Under the pieces are notes generated by a model. That model was given only the letters and a program-made list of their open reading frames with translations. It ran no database searches and was not told the DNA's origin. DNA of 64,000 nucleotides from Felis catus (taxonomy: Eukaryota). The translations under genes and the position numbers were made by a program. The stretch is taken from contig NC_058368.1 of the NCBI RefSeq assembly GCF_018350175.1, positions 116,436,001 through 116,500,000 on the forward strand, written 5' to 3'. Below are positions 36,316 to 51,739 of this stretch, one piece after another (positions within the stretch are counted from its first letter, which is position 1; each line of letters starts with the position of its first letter).

Positions 36316-36742
36316 CTCTGGATCCCATGGGGGAGGAAGGATGAGCATCTTGGGCCTGCAGGTAGAGGCCTTTCAACCACAGACACCATATCTGGCTTCC
36401 CCAGCTATCACCCTTTTGCTATCTTCAACTTTTCCACAGTCTTCATCCTTGCTCTCCTTCTTGCAAAAGGTGAACAGTGGCTTATCAGCCAATAATCTGG
36501 ACGCCCCTCCTTAACCCCATGGGACTGGCCCCAAGACTGTGGCTTTTAGGGCCACCGGCCCCTTCCTATTCCAGCCCTGAGTGTGGAGTTTGCAGCTGAC
36601 TCTGATTTTCAGTATTCTCTCTAGCAATGTACCACGGCTCTTCCCTCCTGCGAGCCGGCTCCATACTGATTTTTCCCAAACTTGTTATAATTCCCGCTGT
36701 CCCCTGGCTAGCTACACAGGCCACCCAGGGTCTGGTTTGGGC

Positions 36743-37717
36743 ATGAGTGTAGAGGACGGGGGTATGCCAGGCCTGGGCCGTCCCAGGCAGGCCCGCTGGA
36801 CCCTGATGCTACTCCTGTCCACTGCCATGTATGGTGCCCATGCCCCATTACTGGCACTGTGCCATGTGAACGGCAGAGTGCCCTTCCGGCCCTCCTCAGC
36901 TGTGCTGCTGACTGAGCTGACCAAGCTACTGTTGTGCGCCTTCTCCCTCTTGGTGGGCTGGCAAGCATGGCCCCAAGGGGCTCCTCCATGGCGCCAGGCT
37001 GCCCCCTTTGCGCTATCAGCCCTTCTCTATGGCGCTAACAACAACCTGGTGATCTATCTTCAACGTTACATGGACCCCAGCACCTATCAGGTGCTGAGCA
37101 ATCTCAAGATTGGAAGCACGGCCCTGTTCTACTGCCTCTGTCTCCGGCACCGCCTCTCTGCACGCCAGGGCTTGGCACTGCTGCTGCTGATGGCAGCAGG
37201 GGCCTGCTATGCAGCTGGTGGCCTCCAAGACCCTGGAAGCACCCTTCCTGGGCCCCCTCCAGCAGCTGCTGCTGGCCGCATGTCCCTGCATATCACTCCA
37301 CTGGGACTGCTGCTTCTCATCTTGTACTGCCTCATCTCGGGCCTGTCGTCCGTGTACACAGAGCTGCTCATGAAGCGACAGCGGCTGCCCCTAGCACTTC
37401 AGAACCTCTTCCTCTACACTTTTGGTGTGCTCCTGAACCTAGGTCTACACGCAGGTGGTGGCCCTGGCCCAGGCCTCCTGGAGGGTTTCTCTGGTTGGGC
37501 AGCGCTTGTGGTACTGAGCCAGGCACTAAATGGACTGCTCATGTCAGCTGTCATGAAGCATGGCAGCAGCATCACACGGCTCTTTGTTGTGTCCTGCTCC
37601 CTGGTGGTCAATGCCGTGCTCTCAGCAGCCTTGCTGCGGCTGCAGCTCACAGCTGCCTTCTTCCTGGCCACACTGCTCATTGGCCTGGCTGTGCGCCTGT
37701 ACTATGGCAGCCGCTAG
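36743..37717 (+). CDS. SLC35A4: Solute carrier family 35 member A4, nucleotide-sugar transporter family, 324 aa, single coding exon
   Basis: MSVEDGGMPGLGRPRQARWTLMLLLST...YMDPSTYQVLSNLKIGSTALFY...LAVRLYYGSR*; multi-transmembrane hydrophobic pattern with the SLC35A YQVLSNLKI motif. Confidence 0.97.
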   Translation: MSVEDGGMPGLGRPRQARWTLMLLLSTAMYGAHAPLLALCHVNGRVPFRPSSAVLLTELTKLLLCAFSLLVGWQAWPQGAPPWRQAAPFALSALLYGANNNLVIYLQRYMDPSTYQVLSNLKIGSTALFYCLCLRHRLSARQGLALLLLMAAGACYAAGGLQDPGSTLPGPPPAAAAGRMSLHITPLGLLLLILYCLISGLSSVYTELLMKRQRLPLALQNLFLYTFGVLLNLGLHAGGGPGPGLLEGFSGWAALVVLSQALNGLLMSAVMKHGSSITRLFVVSCSLVVNAVLSAALLRLQLTAAFFLATLLIGLAVRLYYGSR

Positions 37718-38648: not shown

Positions 38649-38654
38649 AATAAA
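38649..38654 (+). terminator. SLC35A4 polyadenylation signal AATAAA
   Basis: AATAAA about 930 nt after the stop, followed by G/T-rich sequence. Confidence 0.75.
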
Positions 38655-39612
38655 GTATTCTGGGGTGCAGGTGGTTCCTGCAATTGGCTATGATTGTCCT
38701 GTGTTGCGTAGATTCTCTCTAACATAATTTTGTTACCCTAGTGCCCTGAATGTCTTAATCCTCGAGTAACTGATAGACTAGGAGAAAAGACTTCTATCTA
38801 TTGCTAGGAGCATTATTTCCTTTGAGGGCTCCATGGAGTGGAGACTGTTCTGTCACAACTTTTCAAATTTCTCTAAAGCACAAAACCTGGGCCCTGGAGA
38901 ATTTGGAGGGACTCTTGGGAATAGAAGGTCCTGGCTGGACCTGGCAGGACAAACCAAGTTTTAGGCTAGAGAACTCATGGATTCAATATGGTTTTGATTC
39001 TTATTTCCTCTGGTTCCCTCACTGATACTCCTTCCTGCCATCTCTTCTCATGGCCAGAGGAACATCAGGCCCTGCTCCCATGGGAGCATACCTAGTAAGC
39101 TTACACACACACACACGCACACACACACTGCAGACCTACTGAAGAATCTGGGAGAGTAGGGTTTGGGAATCTTTTTTCTTTAATAAGCTAAGTGATTCTG
39201 CTGCACACTTCAGTTTGTGAACCACCACATGTGCAGTGTAGAACTATAGTTCTAACAGGCTTGAATTTGAATTCTGGCTCTGTGACTTAGCGGACTTGTC
39301 CTTGGGCAGTTACTTAACCTCTCCTAGCTTTAGTTGCCTTACCTCTGAAATGGGGGTCAAGTGGCACCTACTACATAGGGTAGTGAAAAAGGCTAAAATG
39401 AAGAGGTGGATATCAGGTACCTAGCAGGGACTGACACAATGAGACCTGGTTAGTGGTATCGTTCATTATCCATAGTGAAGGTTAGCGTAGTTATCCCAGC
39501 TCCCTCTCCCTTCTGGGACAGTGAAGAATGAAGAGAGAAGAAGCTGCCCCTGAAAGACTACTGATCACCAGACTGCTTCCCAGGGCAGCCATCCAGCACG
39601 ACTGGCCCCAGC

Positions 39613-42600
39613 CTAGCCTATACCCTGCTGAAGCTGCTGGTTCTGGGCTTGAAGCTCCTGGTTCTGTGTGGCCAGTTGGAGCGTGTCTTGCAGGATACCA
39701 GCCAGCAGGCTGCGGTGGTGATGCTCTGTGGTCATGGTCTGCTCCTCCCACAGCTCTCGCCAGGCTCGAAATACCTGTGCCCAGATTCAGAGATGCTTGT
39801 CAGTCAGCCTTGGAACCATTTCAAGGCCTGCCTTCTGTCCCCACTGACCTGCAGTGTATGGCATGTCCGAGCCCGGGCAGCCTGCACGTGCACGTCATAG
39901 AGGGCCATGAGGTCCTGCTCTGCAGTGTCCCGCTCTGCCTGAAGGGCCTCCAGCTGGAGTCTCCATAGTGTCTGCTCCCGCTGCCATCTCTGCCTCTCGA
40001 AGGCCTTCAGTGATAATACATATTCTTTGTTCAGTGCCACCTGTGTGCCAGACTTTGTTCCTAAACACTTCATGTGTATTCATTCATTTTAGCCAATGAA
40101 ACCCAGGGGAGGAAAGTAGTTGCCATTTTAGTTTTCCAAATCTGGTAGTTAGATTTGGAAACTGTGAATCAGAGAAGTGACCTAACCTGCCCAAATTTGC
40201 ATGGCTAGTGAGGGACAGAACTGAGATGACACATGCCCTTCAATGGTTCACTATCATTCTTAGGGTAAAGTCCAAATTCAGAGGCATGGCACACACTGGT
40301 CTCTTTAGCCTCACCTCTGACCATGTACCTGCTGGGGCCCCCCAGATGGACAATTTGCAGTACCCAGACTGTACTTTGCCATTGCTTCCCTCTGGACCTT
40401 TGCTCATAAACCATAGTCCTCAGAACGTATCCTCCCATCCCCTCATGCTCACAAGTTTTGTTTCCTAATTTGGGCAAACAAGTATATTTATTTAGTGCCT
40501 CTATGTGATGCATATGAACTTCCCACATGGAGTTCAGTCTAGTGAATTCCTCTGGCTGATTTGTTTTTCAAGTCTCAGCCTAGATGCCATCTTTGCTCCT
40601 CTCCTGCCTGAGTCAGGCACTCTTCTTTGTCCCCACAAGCCCCTAGCTCCCTGCATCACTGCGCTTAGCCCTGAAAATTGCTACATCTGTCCCCCATAAA
40701 GCTATAAGGACCATGAGAGAGGGTATGGCCCAGCCTGTTGTGACTGAGGCTGGATTCCAGCCCCCAACACAATGCCTGAACCAATTAGAAGAAGCCTCAA
40801 GTCCCCTACTTGACCCTCCTCACCTCCTTTCCAGCCACCAGGCCTTTGACTTGGTCACCTTCCACCTCTTCCTCCTCCTGTTCCAAATGCTTCAGTTCCT
40901 CTTGGATCCGTATCTGGTGCTGTTCTTGAAGTCTCTTCCTCTGTGCCTGGGCCAAGAAGAACTGCAGGGCCACATCTGGGGCGTGCCAGGCCTACATGGC
41001 ATTAGTCTAGGCTCAGCCAGAAGTCTGTGTGTGCCACAGCTTCGGGATACGGTGCCCAACTTTCCAACAGAACCCCACCACCAGGGCTGTTCCTACAACT
41101 ACGTCTGGGACCCAACTGTCCTGTAAGAGCCTGTAGCCTGGACAGAGACTTGGGGCCATGGGAGAAAGGTATTGGCTCTGCCAATAGGTGCCATGGAGGC
41201 CTTAAGGATCCTATACTCCTAATGTGACCCAGTAGGAAAACAGCCTTCCCATGCCCCTCTCTTAGGAATCATAGCCTGTCAGGTCCTCTCTTTGTCAGAA
41301 GCTCCATATTTGTCCCTGATGTTGGGGCACAGAAGTGGTAGACATGTTAGCTGTGCTCTGCAACTCTTCAGGCCCTCAAGAGCTTCCAGCTGTTCTGGGG
41401 TACATGAGGTATTACCTGTTCCTCAGAGTCCCTAGGAGGATGCTTTTGGTGGAGCCCAGGTCCTAGAGATGCTGTTACTCCTACTACTGGAGGAAAATGC
41501 AATTAAGCCCAACAAAGGTGGAGGGCACCCAGCTCCACCCCAAGCTCCAAACCCACCTTTCGGCTCTCCCTGGAAGCCTGGGCTGTGGCTTGCTGTTGAA
41601 TCTATCACCTGCTGAGAATATATTAAGAATGGGAATTCCATCCCCTTCCTCCTAGGATAGCACGTGTTAAGCTCAGGACTTTGAAATCAGACAGATCAGA
41701 GTCTCAGGCCCTCCTTTCCTCAGCTGTATAACCTCAGGCAGGTGTCTAATCTTTTGAATCCATTTCCTCACCTGTAAAATGGAACTAATAAAAGTTATAG
41801 AGGTGCCTGGGTGGCTCAGTTGGTTGAGCATCCACCTTCATTTCAGGTCATGATCTCACGGTTTGTGAGTTCAAACCTTGCATCGGCTATCAGCACAGAG
41901 CCTGCTTCAGATCCTCTTTCCCCCTCTTTCTCTGTCCCTCCCCTGCTCTCTCTCTCTCTCTTTCTCAAAACAAATAAAATAAACAAAAAAAAAAAAAACA
42001 TTTTTAAAAAGTTGTAGAGAGGGGCACCTGGGTGGCTCAGTCGGTTAAGCGGCCGACTTTGGCTCAGGTCATGATCTCACGGTCCATGAGTTCGAGCCCC
42101 GCGTCGGGCTCTGTGCTGACAGCTCAGAGCCTGGAGCCTGTTTCAAATTCTGTGTCTCCCTCTCTCTGACCCTCCCCCGTTGATGCTCTGTCTCTCTCTG
42201 ACTCAAAAATAAATAAACGTTAAAAAAAAAAAAAGTTGTAGAGGGGCACCTGGGTGGCTCAGTCAGTTAAGCGTCTGACTTTGGCTCAGGTCATGATCTC
42301 ATGGTTCTTGGGTTCGAGCCCTGCGTTGTGTTCTGTGCTGACAGCTCAGAGCTTGGAGCCTGCTTCAGAATCTGTGTCTCCCTCTCTTTCTGCCCCTTCC
42401 CTCCCCTTCTCAAAAATAAATAAAACCTTTTTTAAAAAAAGTTGTAGAGAGCATGAAATAAGACACCCAAAGCGCTAAGCAGTAGCAGATGCTGCTCAAT
42501 AAATGGGAACTTACATGCCTAAGTCCCGAAGCTCAGGGCTGTAAAAACAAGTTGTAAGTACGAAAAGGGTAGGACCAGGAGAAGGTGGACAGAAGCAGCA

Positions 42601-45600
42601 TTCCAGCCACCCTTTGGCAAATACTGGAAGACAGCACCCCCTTCTGCACAGGAGAGGCCATGCATTCTAAACGGATGCAAAAGCACCATACTGAACCTAA
42701 GGACTTGGGTGTTTGTACCTCTGCTGCCTTTGATTATCTCAGTGACCCTGAGACACTCAGATCCCTTCTCTGAGCCTCAGTTTGCTGACCTGAAAAATGT
42801 GAGCAATACTGTTTTCCCTGCTTAAAGTAATTTTATGGCTTCCCCTTGACCTTCAAGACAAAGTCCAAACATCTCAATAAATTTACAAAGCCCTTTATGA
42901 CCGGGCCCCTACTTATCTCTTCAATCATTCTCTCTTGACTCTTCCTCAAAATATCCTACAGCAAAATGATCTGCTTGCAGTCCCCCAAAGAGATCAAGCC
43001 CCTGCTTACTTCCGAGACTTGACCTGTTAGTTTCTGTGCCTGGAATGTTTGTTCTTCACTCATCTTTGCTGGCTACCTCCTTCAGAAATCAACATCCCCT
43101 GTGAAGTGTTTAGATGCCCCACTGAACCCTGTGTTGATAAAGCCTTCAAAGCACTGATCATGGTGTTATAATTGCTTCTCTCCAGAAGATTGCAAATTCC
43201 ATGAGGACAGGGGTTTCCCAGGGCCTACGTGGCACTATGCCTGACACACTGAGAAGTCACTAAAATGTTTGGAAATCAATAAATTAGTGAACAAAGAAAG
43301 GGACTCCTCATAGTGCTCTGTAGATAGGAGAGAAGGCAGACATCAATGGGGCTCCTAAGAGGTTGAGCCAGAAAACATACCTGTAGTTCTGGGAGTCCCA
43401 CAGCCTCAGCTTTGACCCCTTTGAGCATCTGGCTTCCTGGGCACTGGCTGCAGGCTTTTACCACCTATGGAGAGAGGGTTTAAGGTAGGCTCCAACAGCT
43501 ACTCTCTTCAGCACCTCCAGGCCTCACCTTGCTTACCCGCAACTCTCGCAGTGCCCTGCCCAGCTGGCTGAGCCCACTTTCTGTGAGGGTGTCTCCAAGG
43601 AGGCCTGAACGCAGGCTCTTCAGGTTTGCCCGGCGGGCACGTGCCTCTTCTACTGCATCCCACTGGGTGGGCCTCACCTGTTTCACCTGCATCCTCCTTC
43701 CCGAGGCCCCCAACAGAGCAGCTCTGAGTAAGCTCAGGGAGCCACCTAATAAGGGGAGACTCGGAGTGAATCACTCCTTCTGGACTCCAGAGCACACTGC
43801 CTGTAATACTTGTAATTTTTATTAATACTACTTACAAAAAATAGCTAACACCTATCAGGCTTTTACATGGGCTTGGCACTATGCTAAGAGTTTTTGTGGA
43901 TCACCTCTTTTTATCCACACAACACTCCAATGAAGCAGCAACTCTAATTTTGTCTGCCTACCCCCACATTTTCCAGATGAACCAAATGAAGCTTAGAGAG
44001 GTCAAGCAACTCCCTGGTGAGTGGCAGAGCTAAAACTTAAGCCCAATTCTGTCTGACATTAAAGCCTGTGCCTTTAATCAGGATACCAAACTGGCCTATG
44101 GATAAACATACTTTTGTCCTTCACTGCTTTATCCTTAAGGGCATGAACTGGCCTAATTTTTCTTCCTTACTCCACAGGGCCTGGCACAGTGTGTGGTCTG
44201 GGACTATGTTAGCCAAATTAATGTGTGCTTACTAATTTTGGATACGGAGAGCCAGACTTTTTCTTTCTTTTCACTTTTATTGTAGAAAATTTCAAACATG
44301 TACAAAGTATAGGAAATTCAATCTACTTATCACCCAGCTTCAATAATTGTCAACTCACAGCCATTCTTGTTTGATCTATACCCTCTACTTGACCTCCCCT
44401 AAGTCTCTGACATCATATCATTTCAGAGGGGCCTGATTTTTAATGAGTGTATGAAAATAGGCAAGTTCTCTCCCTTCTCTGATCCTCCCTTTCCTCATTT
44501 ATAAATTAGGCCTCCCTCCCTAAGTTAGATGTGTCTCATGGGGTTGTGGTAAGAATAAAATGTATTAGTGTGAAAATTCTTGGTTAACTGTTGAAAGCCT
44601 CTGAAGGGCGAGGGGTTGCTTTTACTATCAGCCCTGCCTTTCCAGACTTTGGCAACCTAGCCATACTGGGACCTTTCTGAGTCTTGACCCTCCCAGAGGT
44701 GAGGCTGTCTCTGGACTGGGGTTGGGGCTGCAGCTGTTTTGGTGAGAGGGCGGTCAGGCATAAGTTAGATGTCAGAGCTTCCCAAAGAACCCCAGACCCT
44801 TCCCCAGGCCACCTTGAGGGTCCAGGCGAAGAAGAAGACCAGTGTAGTTGTTTCCTTCCAGGAGCCATGACACGATCCAGGGCAGAGAGCCCTCTACCTC
44901 CTCACCAATAACCTTACCAGCCAACACCTGCAGCAGGGGGCAATCTCTGCCAGAAGGAGAGAGGAAGAAAGGAGGGGTCCACTGGTGGATGGGGAAAGAA
45001 ACTGACCCAAATTACATCTGATGGAAAGGCTATTTCCAGAACTTTGGTGCACCACCAGGCAGATTTGCAACCTTGCATAGACCCTTTTTTAAATTTTATT
45101 ATTTAATTACACAAATAATATATTCTCATAGCGCAAAATTTAATTTGTCTATCTGATAAGGGACTTGTATCCAGAACATACATTTATGTATGTATGTATG
45201 CTATTTTTATTTGTTTATTTTTATTTTTGAGAGAGAGAGAGAGAGGGCATGAGATTGAGGGGCAGAGAGAGGGAGAGAGAGAGAGAATCCCATGCAGGCT
45301 CTGCACTGTGCAGAGCCTGAAGCAGGGCTCGAGCTCACCTGGTAAGGGACTCAAACTCATGAACTGTGAGAACCAACTGAGCCACCCGGGCACCCCTATC
45401 CAGGATATTTAAAGAGCTCTTACACCTCAGTGATAGAAGACTAATCACCCTATTTATTTTTTATTTATTTATTTTTTAAGTAGGCAACACAGCCAATGTG
45501 GGGCTTGAACTCACGATCCTGAGATCAAAAGTCATATGCCCTGGGGTACCAGGGTGGCTCAGTTGGTTAAGCATCCGACTTCAGCTCAAGTCATGATCTC

Positions 45601-47941
45601 ACGGTTTGTGAGTTTGAGCCCCGTGTCAGGGTTTGTGCTGACAGCTCAGAGCCTGGAGCCTGCTTCAGATTCTGTGTCTCCCTCTCCTCCTCCTGCTCTG
45701 TCTCTCAAAAATAAATAAATGTTAAAAAAATTTTTTTCTTTAAGAGTCACATGCCCTGCCAACTGAGCCAGCCAGGTGCCCCTAATCACCCAATTTAAAA
45801 TGGCAAAGCAAAGTGACATCCACAAAAATGGCAGAGTATGGAACTCTGGGGATCTGTCCTTTTTCAGCAACATGTGGAAAAAATGGTCAGGATCAACCTT
45901 ACAGCAACTCTGGGGGACAGTGAAAGGTTTACTACAACCAAGTGAATGCTTACCCAGGAGAAAGCAACTTAAATATGTTGAGATCTTTGTGGTGTGTTAA
46001 CTTAACCTAGCCCCAACCTCCTCCCCAGCACAGAGGTTGTCTTGAAGACAACAGCCCATGTTTCTGGTGGTGGGGTGCTTGGCTCTGGAGGGAGCAGAGT
46101 AGATTTTGTTCCCAAGGAACTGTGTTTGTTGTTTTGACTGTCTAGGGTTTCCCCAGAGGAATGACAAAAAGGGCTTCCTTTTGTTTCCCTTACCTTGGAA
46201 CTCTCTCAGGGCAGAGCAGCTATCCTAGATGATAGTCCCTCAAAACACTGAAAAGATGAAAGAACAAGCAAAAATAACAGTTGGGGCAAACAACAGATGC
46301 ATGGAAAGACTGGGAAGAAAAGTTGGGGAGTCAGATTGGGGGGGGGGGGGAGATAAGGAAAATTCCCCCATGCACCAAGGAATCTAGAAAGCCACACACA
46401 TGCCCAGAGCAGGATCCAGGCTGAGAAAAGACCTGAGAAGATGGCAAGTTTTCATCTCTGTTTTTTTAAGCTTATTGTAAGCAGGAAGTAAGACTAAGGC
46501 AGAGATGTAAGTGGAATGGTGAAGCATAGAAGGACTGACCCAACACAGAGCCAATCTATGGAAAGCTGGAGATTTTAAAAATTTTTTTTTCTTTCTCTTT
46601 TTATTCCTTTAATAAAAAATGTTTTTGTCCCAGTAGAGTAAGGAATTCTATGTCAGGTCACTAGCTAACCACTGAGATGACAGAATGGAGACTTCAGTGG
46701 CAACAAAGAATCCAGCCTTTGCAAAAATTGTTTGGAAAGTAACTAAGCAAACAGATAGTTGCAGCCCACAGCAAGCAACAATGCAAACCCTAGAGGGGAT
46801 GGGGAATCTCTTTTTCAGAGTTCCCCCATTATCATATCCAAAATGTCAGAGCCTAAGGAAAAGAAATGGAGACGTAAGAGACCAACATAATGAAGAATAT
46901 AATCTTTACAAAAATAAAAATTCTCAAATTGGGCAGTTTCCAACCAAAAAAATATCTGGCATGCAAATAAAGATGCATGGCCCACCCACAGGGGAAAAAA
47001 AAATTAATAGAAACTGTCCTTGAGGAAGCACAGACATTGGATTCACTAAAGACTTTAATCCAACTATCTTAAATATGCTCAGAAAAGTAAAGGAAATCAA
47101 GAAAATGATGTCTCAATGAATAGAAAATACGAATAGAAGCACAGAAATTATAAAAAGGAACCAAAAAGAGGGGTGTCTGGCTGGCTTAGTAAGTGGAGCA
47201 TGCGACTCTTGATCTTGGGGTTGTGAGTTTGTGCCCCACACTNNNNNNNNNNNNNNNNNNNNNNNNNNNNNNNNNNNNNNNNNNNNNNNNNNNNNNNNNN
47301 NNNNNNNNNNNNNNNNNNNNNNNNNNNNNNNNNNNNNNNNNNNNNNNNNNNNNNNNNNNNNNNNNNNNNNNNNNNNNNNNNNNNNNNNNNNNNNNNNNNN
47401 NAAATTCCCTAGAGAGCAGATTTGAGTGGGCACAAGAAAGAATCTCAGCAAAGTTGAAAATAGGTCAAAAAAATTATGCAAAAAGAAAAAAGAATGAAGG
47501 AAAATGAGCCCAAGGGGCCAGTGAATGCATGAAGTGTATAAATACATGCAGAATGGGACTGTCAGAGGGAGAAGAGAGGGAAAAAGGGGCAGAAGGAATA
47601 TTTGAAGAAATAGTGCTCAAAAATTCCCCAAATTTATGAAAGACATGAATCTATACATCCAAGAAGCTCAACAAATTTCAAGAAGGATAAACTCAAAGAG
47701 ATTCATGCCAAGACACATTATAATCAAACCACCAAAAGCCAAAGAGAGAATCTTGAAAACAGAATAAGAGAAGCAACTTGTGATGGTACGAGTGATCCTC
47801 CATAAGAATGAAAACCAGTTTCTCATCAGGAATTGTGGAAGCCATTAGTGCCTGGCTGACTCAGTCAGTACAGCATGTAACTCTTGATCTCCAGGTTGTG
47901 AGTTCCAGCCCCATGTTGTATGTAGAGATTACTTAAAAATA

Positions 47942-47978
<37 letters not shown>

Positions 47979-50900
47979 AGAAAGAAATTATGGAGACCAG
48001 AATGCAGTGAGATGACATATTTAAAGTGCTGAAAGGGGTGTCTGGGTGGCTCAGTCGGCTGAGCCACTCTTGCTTTCAGCTCAGGTCATGATTGCAGGGT
48101 CGTGGGATGGAGCCCCACATCAGTGTGGAGGCTGCTTGGGATTCTCCTTCCCTCTCTCCCCCACTCCATCTCTCTCTCTGTAACTCTGCCCCTCTCCCCT
48201 GCCTGCTCTCTTTCTCTCTCTAAAAATAATGCTGGGAAAATAAAGTGTGTCAACTAAGAATTCCATATCTGGCAAAACTATCCTTCAAGAACGTGTGAGA
48301 AATTAAGGTATTCCCAGATTAGTAAAAGCTGAGGGAGTTCATTGCTGGTAGACCTGCCTTATAAGAAATGCTAAAGGATGGGGCACCTGGGTGGCTCAGC
48401 TGGTTGAGCGTCCGACTTCAGCCAAGGTCATGATCTCATGGTCTGTGAGTTTGAGCCCCACGTCGGGCTCCGTGCTGACAGCACAGGCCTGGAGCCTGCT
48501 TCAGATTCTGTGTCTCCCTATCTCTCTCTGCCCCTCCCCAGCTCATGCTCTGTCTCTCTCTCTCTGTCAAAAATAAACATTAAAAAAAATTAAAAAAAAA
48601 AAAAAAAAGAAATGTTCAAGGAGGGAGTCCTTCACCATGTCAGAGGTGAGGAAATGAGACTCTGAGGCTGCCCTGGGTCTCTGCATCCATACTTCAGCCA
48701 CACCCCCACCCTGTTCCCTAAAGCAGTCAGAAGATTCCATCAGACTTACAGGTCTCTGGGGAGCTGCAGGATCCTCAAGGCCCCTCGCCACATACCCCGG
48801 GTCCCAGGCCCCTCAGGAGGGTCAGGCCCTGGGCAGGACATGGTGACAGTGAGCAGAGAGCAGGCCCTGTGGAGGACAGGGTAGGATGAGATCAAATGCC
48901 TAAGGGATAGGGGTTGGGGGTGACAGGTGCCCTCCTGTCCTCACCTGCCTTCATCCCCTGCAGCTTGTAAGTACAGCTCTGAGGCAGTTCTTGAGTCGGA
49001 CACCTCCACCTCACTGGCATTTTCTACCACCCTGGAGGATGGGGAGACAAGCTCAACTCCTAAGCACCTCCTAAGAGGTTCTGGGGTTCTGTCCAGCCCC
49101 CCAGAACCTCTGCATGGGGAGTCCTTTGGGGTCCCAAGAGCCTGTAAGAACCATCCCCAAGGTTCCAAGCTCAGTATATCCCTTGAAAGCCTATCATCTT
49201 CATCATCTTTCTTCTCCTGTCATCTACCCAGTTCTGCTCAACGAGATGCTCACATCACCCAGATGGTAATGACTGAGTGGAAGAGGTGTAGATGGATAGG
49301 GTAAGAAGAGTGAGAGGGCTGGGGATACGAGCTGCAGGGAAGATGATGAGTGGGTGTGATGAGCACAACCCCAAGTGCAGAGCTTCCCTTCTGCATGGCA
49401 GTGGGGAGAAACCTCCCACGGCTAGGTTTGGGGGTTTCAGCCCTGCCTTAAGACAAGCACCCTCAGATCCCGTTGGCCCCTGGAGACTCACAAGCCCAAA
49501 GGGGACACGTCTAACACCGATAGGTTCTCTCTCCCTGGAGAGAGCAGGTCCTGAGTCTTTCCACTGGGGCTGAGCTGCAATCACACAAGCACAACACCAG
49601 TTACAAACAGCCTTTCCCAGACCTCGTCTCACCAGATCCTCCCGCTGGGGCTCCTTGAGTCAACGAGGGCACCAACATTCAGCCATTTCAGGCAGGAAAT
49701 AGGAGACCTCAGAGAGGCAAGCCCACACTGGTCAGTGGCAGATGAGGCTAGACTCAGTCTCTTCTGGCTGCCTGCGAGCCTCAGGCCCTTTCCACAGCAC
49801 CACCATTGGTTCCCAGGGCTCCCCTCCATGCAGGGTCTCACCTGCACCAGGCTAAGGGTGCTAACCCCAGGAACAGCGCCCCTGTGGGGCAGAGTTTCCT
49901 CAAACAGCATCTGCAACAGCTAAAGTGGAGAAAGGGGTTCAGTACGGATGGAGAAAGGATAAATCTGTCCTTCAACAGTTTCGTGACGGTGAAGTCTATG
50001 CCCGGTTCTATGCTACGTGCTGCGGACACAGGGACACAGTGTCCAAGACAGAAACAGCCCCAGCCCTCACGGTTCACAGCGAGCCAGTCAAATGAGTAGA
50101 CATTTTCAATGAGACCTGCTGTTTCCTAAAACAGGGGCCTGCCTATGATGAAGTTCTGAGGCAGCTATTTTGACTTGGGGGCATTTTGAAGAAGCCCTGA
50201 AAACAAAACTTTCAAGTTTATTATCGGTATTATGAAAAACTGTGAATATTAGACCTTGCTGGATATTTCATGTTTGCACACCACCCCATCTTGACCCTCA
50301 CCCTATGGGCCCAGTCCGCTAGGGAGGGGAAGGGAAGTTTCTCAAAGGTCTCCTGGAGGAAACAACACCTGAGCCTCATGAGACCTATGCTTGGTAGCTC
50401 CCCCAGGACTCACCTGAGGTACAAGCCGAGGTGTCTCTGTTTCCCGACCCCGAAGCAGTAGGGACACACTGTACCCTCGGGCCACCAAGCCTAATGTGGA
50501 CTGGACTCGTGCTAGCAGCTCCTGCTCAGCCTCCTGCAGGGGACACAGACATATCCCCCGGTCACAGGTGCCCTGACCCAGCCTGCCTGAGCAATGGGCT
50601 TGGGAAACCCTTAGCACTCCAGGATCCAGACGCCTGAGGATTCCCATCCTCCTCCCGTTTCCCTACAACACCCCCTACCTGAGCAGCATCAGAGCCCAGG
50701 ACTCTGTCAAAGGTGATGCATTGTTCCTGCAGGGGAAGACTGGGCTCAGCATTGTCACTCCCATCTTCCAGGGCCTCACCCGCACCCCGTCCCATTTCTA
50801 CCTGAGTGTCTAGAGTCTCCGGCTGAAGCAGGCAGATGCTCTGGGGCCCCTCCAGAAGCAGTGTGGGGCAACATGTGTCCTCAGGGCCTGAGAAGGATGG

Positions 50901-51251
50901 ACTGTATATTAACTCCCGTGCCTAAGTCCTGCCCTCAACTTTGGCCTCAGTTTCCTAACCTAGAGTACTGAGCACAGGATCAGACCCCCTGAGAGGCGGA
51001 GCGTCCTCAAAAAGCATCTGCAGCAGCTAAGGCTGTAAAATGGCCTTGGCTTCCCCTCTCCCAGGAGGCTCCCCCAGGCTGCGTTACTTCCAAGAGTGAA
51101 TGTGTAAGGCCTTCTTCTCACCTGATTCTCTTCCACTCTCAACTTCTACCACCACAGTCAGCCTGGCCTGGGGGTTGTCCATGAGGGCTGGGGGCACTGA
51201 GCTGCCCTGGCCCAAACCAGCCTCTGCGCTTGCTACCTCTCCACACTCCAT
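39613..51251 (-). CDS. Uncharacterised 16-exon gene: degenerate kinesin-motor-like domain plus coiled-coil tail, 595 aa (probable orthologue of mouse E230025N22Rik)
   Basis: Exons (minus): 51251-51122, 50887-50802, 50726-50679, 50533-50414, 49919-49842, 49574-49492, 49031-48945, 48866-48750, 44946-44813, 43745-43537, 43464-43381, 41611-41557, 41486-41416, 40991-40824, 40004-39849, 39774-39613. Total 1788 nt, all GT-AG, phases concordant, no internal stop. GCCATGG Kozak start with an in-frame TGA 12 codons upstream. Kinesin-like segments occur in the correct order: ITFDRVLGSDAAQ, GYSVSLLLRG, QDLLSPGRENLSV, LVVENASEVEV, RACSLLTVTM, GALRILQL, LLEGNNYTGLLLRLDP. Confidence 0.85.
41800..42440 (+). 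mobile_element. Three tandem CAN-SINEs inserted at one target site within a MIR
   Basis: Heads at about 41800, 42021 and 42243, separated and flanked by aaagtt(g/a)tagag. Confidence 0.92.
45200..45785. mobile_element. Cluster of nested CAN-SINEs
   Basis: Minus-strand SINE 45200-45396; plus-strand SINE 45543-45740 inserted into a second minus-strand SINE (about 45450-45782). Confidence 0.8.
45790..48625 (+). mobile_element. Degraded L1 5' UTR/ORF1 region interrupted by several CAN-SINEs (about 47170, 47847, 48035, 48380-48606)
   Basis: ORF1-like catccaagaagctcaacaaatttcaagaaggataaactcaaagagattcatgccaagacacattataatcaaac and aagaattccatatctggcaaaactatccttcaaga. Confidence 0.8.
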
Positions 51252-51739
51252 GGCTTCTATGCCTCTCAGATTCCCCTCAATAATTCATCTCCCTGATCTG
51301 CAGGCTCTGGGTAGGGCCTCTAAATAACAACTTATCAAAGGAGGTGATAGTCCCCTCTTTTCTGAGTGAATCAGAATGTTGCATGGGATTCTTCTTCTTT
51401 TTTTTTCCCCTCTTTTGAAAAGGGTCAAACACATATACCTGCAGAGAGAAAGTATGATGAGCCTCCAAGCACCCAGCTTCGGCAATTACCAACTTATGAC
51501 CAGTCTTATTTCTTCCTTTCCCCTTCCCATCCCCTGTGGATTCTTTTGAAGCAAATCCTAGACACCGTCCATTTCATCTATAGCTTTTCCAGCATATATT
51601 TATAAGATAACTACCTTTTTTTAAATGACAGCTTTGTTAAGATATAGTTCATATACCATACAATTCACCCATTTAAAGTGTTTATTTCAAACATACCTTA
51701 GTATGTTTGCAGATAATGTGTAACTATCACCACACCCCA

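Follow-up and report, generated by a model that had tools for sequence, protein, structure and literature searches.

The window analysed here, a 64,000-nucleotide (nt) stretch of the domestic cat genome (Felis catus, RefSeq assembly GCF_018350175.1, contig NC_058368.1, forward-strand positions 116,436,001 to 116,500,000), carries on its minus strand a gene of 16 exons that very probably encodes a kinesin-like protein with a dead motor head. The exon chain runs from 51251 down to 39613 (positions counted within the window), and inspection of its stop-free segments and boundary nucleotides found GT..AG at all 15 introns and compatible phases throughout, so that the frame described in the original prediction (16 phase-matched exons, stop-free from a GCCATGG start at 51251 to a TAG at 39613) could be rebuilt from the sequence. 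The reconstructed coding sequence comes to 1785 nt (594 residues), with the terminal TAG at 39613–39615 as its sole stop; the 1788 nt and 595 residues originally given are obtained with the upstream copy of a tandem acceptor at exon 12 (cag/CAG, a NAGNAG site; 41611 instead of 41608), and the extra glutamine that this copy adds is present in the seal, lemur and buffalo proteins. The parts of the gene are as follows.

51122–51251, minus strand: exon 1 (130 nt), with the ATG at 51251; omitted by RefSeq cat isoforms X1 and X3.
50962–51032, minus strand: decayed copy of exon 5 within intron 1, with stops closing it off (55 of its 71 nt agree with coding-sequence positions 379–449).
50802–50887, minus strand: exon 2 (86 nt), entered in phase 1; 100% identical to the Prionailurus protein.
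50679–50726, minus strand: exon 3 (48 nt), with an FD.V motif like that of kinesin β3.
50414–50533, minus strand: exon 4 (120 nt), the expected P-loop site, where 11 residues are gone.
49842–49919, minus strand: exon 5 (78 nt), matched by tblastn.
49492–49574, minus strand: exon 6 (83 nt), matched by marsupial, turtle, frog and axolotl proteins.
48945–49031, minus strand: exon 7 (87 nt), matched by tblastn.
48750–48866, minus strand: exon 8 (117 nt), with degenerate sequence at the positions of both switch I and switch II.
47243–47401, no strand: assembly gap (N) in intron 8, non-coding.
44813–44946, minus strand: exon 9 (134 nt), α4/L12/α5-like; the weakest donor (AAG/gtggcc).
43537–43745, minus strand: exon 10 (209 nt), α6 and a neck-like helix.
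43381–43464, minus strand: exon 11 (84 nt).
41557–41611, minus strand: exon 12 (52 or 55 nt, according to whether the tandem acceptor is used at 41608 or 41611), linker.
41416–41486, minus strand: exon 13 (71 nt), linker.
40824–40991, minus strand: exon 14 (168 nt), where the coiled coil begins; 100% to the Felis catus isoforms, with an inner acceptor (40946) in the Prionailurus model.
39849–40004, minus strand: exon 15 (156 nt), coiled coil.
39613–39774, minus strand: exon 16 (162 nt including the TAG at 39613–39615), coiled coil; 100% to the Felis catus isoforms.
39179–39184, minus strand: candidate poly(A) signal ATTAAA, recognized by pattern only, 428 nt past the stop.

The start of exon 1 (the ATG within GCCATGG, preceded 11 codons earlier by an in-frame stop) is shared by seal, lemur, buffalo, gerbil and marsupial proteins; a second in-frame ATG at 51182 corresponds to residue 24, and no CpG island was found upstream of the 51251 start. 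The run of Ns inside intron 8 (48749–44947) touches no exon, and as exon 8 is joined directly to exon 9 in the proteins of felids and other orthologues, the frame is independent of this gap and nothing coding is expected within it. Judged from its sequence, the 16-exon gene is real and intact in the cat.

An open GT–AG chain is by itself weak evidence for a gene, since a crude splice-chain search (which over-predicted exons and was kept solely as a chance control) returned other stop-free chains of 14, 20, 23 and 29 exons from the same ATG to the same TAG. That the locus holds no gene, merely a fortuitous string of open segments, could draw on these many alternative chains between the same ends; it is nevertheless refuted by collinear, exon-only matches to independent proteins ranging from felids to axolotl, and we give it virtually no credence. 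In tblastn comparisons the proteins of two marsupials, a UniParc entry, turtle, frog and axolotl matched only the exons of the model, collinearly and on the minus strand, and it is this exon-by-exon agreement with independent orthologues that places the 16-exon chain beyond chance.

A phmmer search with exon 10 alone retrieved 26 proteins, the best of which (a 561-residue Prionailurus viverrinus entry, “uncharacterized protein LOC125164285”) is 100% identical over the exon. Using this Prionailurus protein as query returned 192 homologues, nearly all named “uncharacterized protein LOC...” (carnivores, ruminants, whales, bats, rodents, lemurs and others), and a macaque protein returned 195; the homology search that the original prediction had proposed for mammalian orthologues thus yields more than 190 predicted ones. 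Of 593 residues of the window model aligned to the 595-residue Neofelis protein LOC131518887, 575 are identical; the Neofelis model draws the exon 1/2 boundary differently. Isoforms X1 and X3 of Felis catus LOC102900045 match exons 3, 14 and 16 at 100% (tblastn). The Prionailurus model skips exon 3, which Felis catus isoform X1, Neofelis, seal, lemur and marsupials retain. Full-length models of ~590 residues exist in carnivores, lemurs, ruminants, rodents and marsupials, and relatives beyond eutherians were found in marsupials, turtle, frog and axolotl, a distribution suggesting an origin no later than the early tetrapods.

The orthologue entries of Mus spicilegus and Jaculus bear the name “Riken cDNA E230025N22 gene” (the rat entry is rCG62907), and the cat gene shows the high identity over the whole length, the similar exon structure and the adjoining SLC35A4 that mark the E230025N22Rik orthologous group. 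The RefSeq LOC group and mouse E230025N22Rik are the same gene, with felid matches of 97–100%, a closely similar exon architecture and SLC35A4 as neighbor. SLC35A4 itself is the open reading frame (ORF) at 36581–37717 on the plus strand (Pfam PF04142, E 2.2e-29), tail to tail with the 16-exon gene; the stop codons of SLC35A4 and LOC102900045 lie 1.9 kb apart, and poly(A) signal patterns at 38649 (AATAAA, plus strand) and 39184 (ATTAAA, minus strand) would bring the ends of the two 3′ untranslated regions to within ~0.5 kb of one another. The original placement of mouse E230025N22Rik between Slc35a4 and Cd14 is accordingly borne out on one side, by the orthologue names and the adjoining SLC35A4, while CD14 is not within the 64,000-nt window. 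By sequence, exon structure and position, the window gene is the annotated but uncharacterized LOC102900045, orthologue of mouse E230025N22Rik. It cannot be called hidden, as had been proposed: it is already a RefSeq gene in the cat and has been modeled in well over a hundred mammals, and because automated annotation includes it, its detection is in itself ordinary.

The RefSeq cat isoforms X1 and X3 take as their starts ATGs within introns 2 and 3 of the present model, at 50795 and 50647 respectively, and hence omit exons 1 and 2. Both exons have conserved counterparts in seal, lemur, buffalo, gerbil and marsupials; the RefSeq cat models thus seem to miss two conserved first exons, and the model examined here restores the conserved N-terminus that the isoforms lack. 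Their omission points to intron retention, alternative starts or incomplete annotation.

Among mammalian orthologues, and among single exons of the window, no sequence reaches the gathering threshold of the Pfam Kinesin family PF00225, and the turtle orthologue likewise stays under the cut-off; the axolotl and Mantella orthologues pass it, scoring 61 bits where 29.3 are required (E 1.4e-16 and 1e-16). A profile built from 30 orthologues and searched against the PDB found 38 sequences, all of them kinesin motors (best E 4.7e-10), and the axolotl protein alone found 73, of which the best 60 are all kinesin motors, headed by KIF13B (1.2e-11) in a match whose second stretch spans α4 to the neck. 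Two other matches, both from exon 10, were discarded: a weak oxidoreductase hit in the PDB phmmer search, judged spurious, and P0025 (1253 residues), a low-complexity false positive.

Structure prediction leads to the same family. An AlphaFold model was made for the Neofelis orthologue (which shares 97% identity with the window model) with the 30-orthologue alignment, and its core has a predicted local distance difference test (pLDDT) score of 70–88. Foldseek placed this model with KIF13B (E 2.7e-11, probability 1.00), and VIA-align superposed residues 22–378 on KIF13B with a Z score of 18.4 (294 residues, root mean square deviation 4.3 Å) and on KLP-6 with a Z score of 17.9; the best 50 VIA-align entries are all kinesin structures or complexes that contain a kinesin. 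The predicted model thereby shows that the protein keeps a kinesin motor fold over residues ~22–330. Its best matches in both sequence and structure belong to kinesin-3 (KIF13B, KIF1A, KLP-6), with which it has the motor fold and neck helix in common; it differs from these proteins in being much shorter and in having no P-loop, SSRSH motif, DLAGSE motif, loop L11, or FHA or PH tail. The assignment to kinesin-3 would rest on small score margins rather than on a tree.

What sets this head apart is the state of its nucleotide pocket. In hidden Markov model and multiple alignments, 11 residues are deleted in all aligned mammals exactly at the site of the GxxxxGK[ST] P-loop, which is already degenerate in the turtle, frog and axolotl orthologues. 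Switch I (SSRSH) and switch II (DLAGSE) are replaced in mammals, with the loss of the catalytic Ser/Arg and Asp/Gly/Glu, respectively; the axolotl orthologue has a K-T pair at the P-loop and a D..G remnant at switch II. Loop L11 and the start of α4 are gone, the α4-like/α5-like segment is conserved, and the L12 position is acidic where, from established kinesin structure, a basic one would be expected. The alignments show the nucleotide pocket to be gone in mammals, and deletion of the P-loop, replacement of both switches and absence of L11 together mark the head as a dead kinesin domain, which we infer can neither hydrolyse ATP nor walk. An active motor or nucleoside triphosphatase with a non-canonical nucleotide site could appeal to the retained fold and to the axolotl remnants (the K-T pair and D..G), against which stand the deletion of the whole P-loop segment in every mammal aligned and switches stripped of the catalytic Ser/Arg and Asp/Gly/Glu; we regard such activity as highly improbable.

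ATPase-deficient kinesins are already known in KIF26A/B and KIF7/Costal2, which keep a recognizable nucleotide pocket and bind microtubules. The window protein would resemble them in using, within a dimer, a kinesin head for binding and not for movement, and differs from them in that the pocket segment has been deleted. By analogy with KIF26 or Costal2/KIF7, the dimer might act as a static, rigor-like binder that stays in place while it cross-links or marks microtubules or axonemes. This would suit the α4/L12/α5/α6-like segment, which is among the best conserved parts of the protein (nearly invariant columns across the 30 orthologues) and aligns to the corresponding segment of KIF13B, and it would suit the retention of the fold through the neck; the absence of L11 and of the start of α4, and an L12 that is acidic and not basic, speak against it. 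Since L11 is deleted and L12 acidic, canonical microtubule binding is probably weakened, and we consider a rigor-like binder an unlikely, though still serious, alternative to a scaffold or regulator.

Downstream of the motor fold (~22–330) the predicted layout continues with neck-like helices, a disordered and poorly conserved linker (~374–437) and a conserved coiled coil of three long helices (~438–594). Two copies of residues 438–595 were predicted to pair in parallel and in register with a score of 0.51, against 0.24 for the best control; the mark applied to this score is reached by 21 of 30 proteins solved as homodimers and by none of 23 solved as single chains. Contacts agreed between runs to at least 77% and the pLDDT of the partner was at least 72. 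The prediction supports a parallel dimer formed by the C-terminal coiled coil.

The reading that best accounts for these features, and which we hold to be very likely, is that the annotated LOC102900045/E230025N22Rik orthologue encodes a dead kinesin-like protein of ~594 residues, built from a motor fold, neck, linker and coiled coil, that serves as an ATP-independent dimeric scaffold or regulator. In this scheme the motor head, having lost its nucleotide pocket through deletion of the P-loop, replacement of the switch motifs and loss of L11, would no longer hydrolyse ATP or walk, and would be carried by a parallel dimer as an ATP-independent scaffolding or regulatory platform. Several observations weigh against it. 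No Pfam match was obtained for single exons or for the full-length proteins of felids and other mammals, nor for a whale protein entered in UniProt as a kinesin motor domain protein; the Neofelis model has a mean pLDDT of 61, with residues 1–88 below 50; and the RefSeq cat isoforms leave out exons 1 and 2. The dimer score may have been passed through generic coiled-coil likeness, and the scaffold function and weakened microtubule binding are what we infer from the altered head. Lastly, in a study of hares the gene was one of two with a ratio of nonsynonymous to synonymous substitution (dN/dS) above 1 (PMC6065068), so that its sequence may in part be drifting or under positive selection.

The evolutionary rate bears on whether the gene is maintained at all. 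Mean pairwise identity among eutherians is 0.75, 0.77 and 0.73 for the motor-like region, neck and coiled coil, respectively, and drops to 0.47 in the N-terminal tail and 0.52 in the linker; at ~75% mean identity in its folded parts, the gene is fast-evolving. The argument that an unbroken frame across 16 exons indicates purifying selection does not stand, as open chains arise by chance in the same interval; its conclusion survives on other grounds, purifying constraint being supported by conservation that is tetrapod-wide and structured by domain. A decaying, non-functional gene, transcribed and left open in the cat through chance or its recent past, and heading for loss as perhaps in apes, would be in keeping with this quick evolution (~75% eutherian identity and 10 differences in 561 residues between two small cats), with the hare dN/dS above 1 (PMC6065068), with the fragmentary, inconsistent RefSeq models of many species, monkeys among them, and with the lack of a hominoid protein among the best 120 of 195 matches. 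Set against decay are the intact cat frame with canonical splice sites at 15 of 15 introns, the ~590-residue full-length models across carnivores, lemurs, ruminants, rodents and marsupials, the concentration of conservation in the folded parts and the presence of each exon, still recognizable, in at least one monkey model; we judge it quite improbable.

In primates, the best 120 of the 195 macaque-query matches comprise macaques, baboon, colobines, squirrel monkey and lemurs, with no ape or human protein among them, an absence from protein annotation only. Fragmentary as the monkey models are, each exon can be found in one or more of them. Monkeys thus show no common loss, and the idea that Old World monkeys had jointly lost an exon, which was considered, is not supported. 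Loss of the gene in humans is possible. We advance more tentatively a wider proposal: that most tetrapods carry an orphan kinesin gene left uncounted in human- and mouse-centered censuses, that its pocketless head serves as an ATP-independent dimeric scaffold, and that it has been lost or silenced in apes and humans, and is for that reason nameless.

Although the gene itself is already annotated, its product joins the kinesin superfamily as a catalytically dead member that is new and has so far gone unstudied. A kinesin relative without a P-loop, extending from amphibians to mammals, offers a natural pseudo-motor that could show what use a kinesin head has in the absence of ATP. Were the gene truly absent from apes and humans, phenotypes tied to it in mouse, cat or livestock would involve a gene without a human counterpart.

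The published record on expression comes from the mouse, where papers report weak expression of the gene in uterine epithelium (values of about 1–4) and differential expression in striatum. A literature search found no paper on the function of the E230025N22Rik protein, and the gene name does not appear in the main text of PMC13507954. Three sequencing runs recorded as RNA and a dozen guessed to be RNA, all from the same organism, contained 47–96% of the words of 48700–51300, of which exons make up ~29%; a share above that of the exons fits unspliced RNA or DNA and is no proof of transcription.

The decayed duplicate in intron 1 (50962–51032) begins at an acceptor-like ttag and has stops on either side, and its translation is nearer to the mammalian exon 5 consensus than is that of the exon in use. 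A spliced retro-copy was rejected as its origin, given that the match begins at the acceptor-like ttag and spans exon 5 alone. Ten runs of N, 132–228 letters each, are spread across the window, and carnivore repeats resembling short interspersed elements take up intron 8 as well as the sequence upstream of the gene. ORF fragments of 59–270 residues with ~80% identity to exon 10 occur on many short Logan and ENA contigs and metagenome assemblies (the P0003 and P0013 clusters), and cluster look-ups for such short pieces yielded no names; these are probably host DNA in metagenomes, the host being possibly human.

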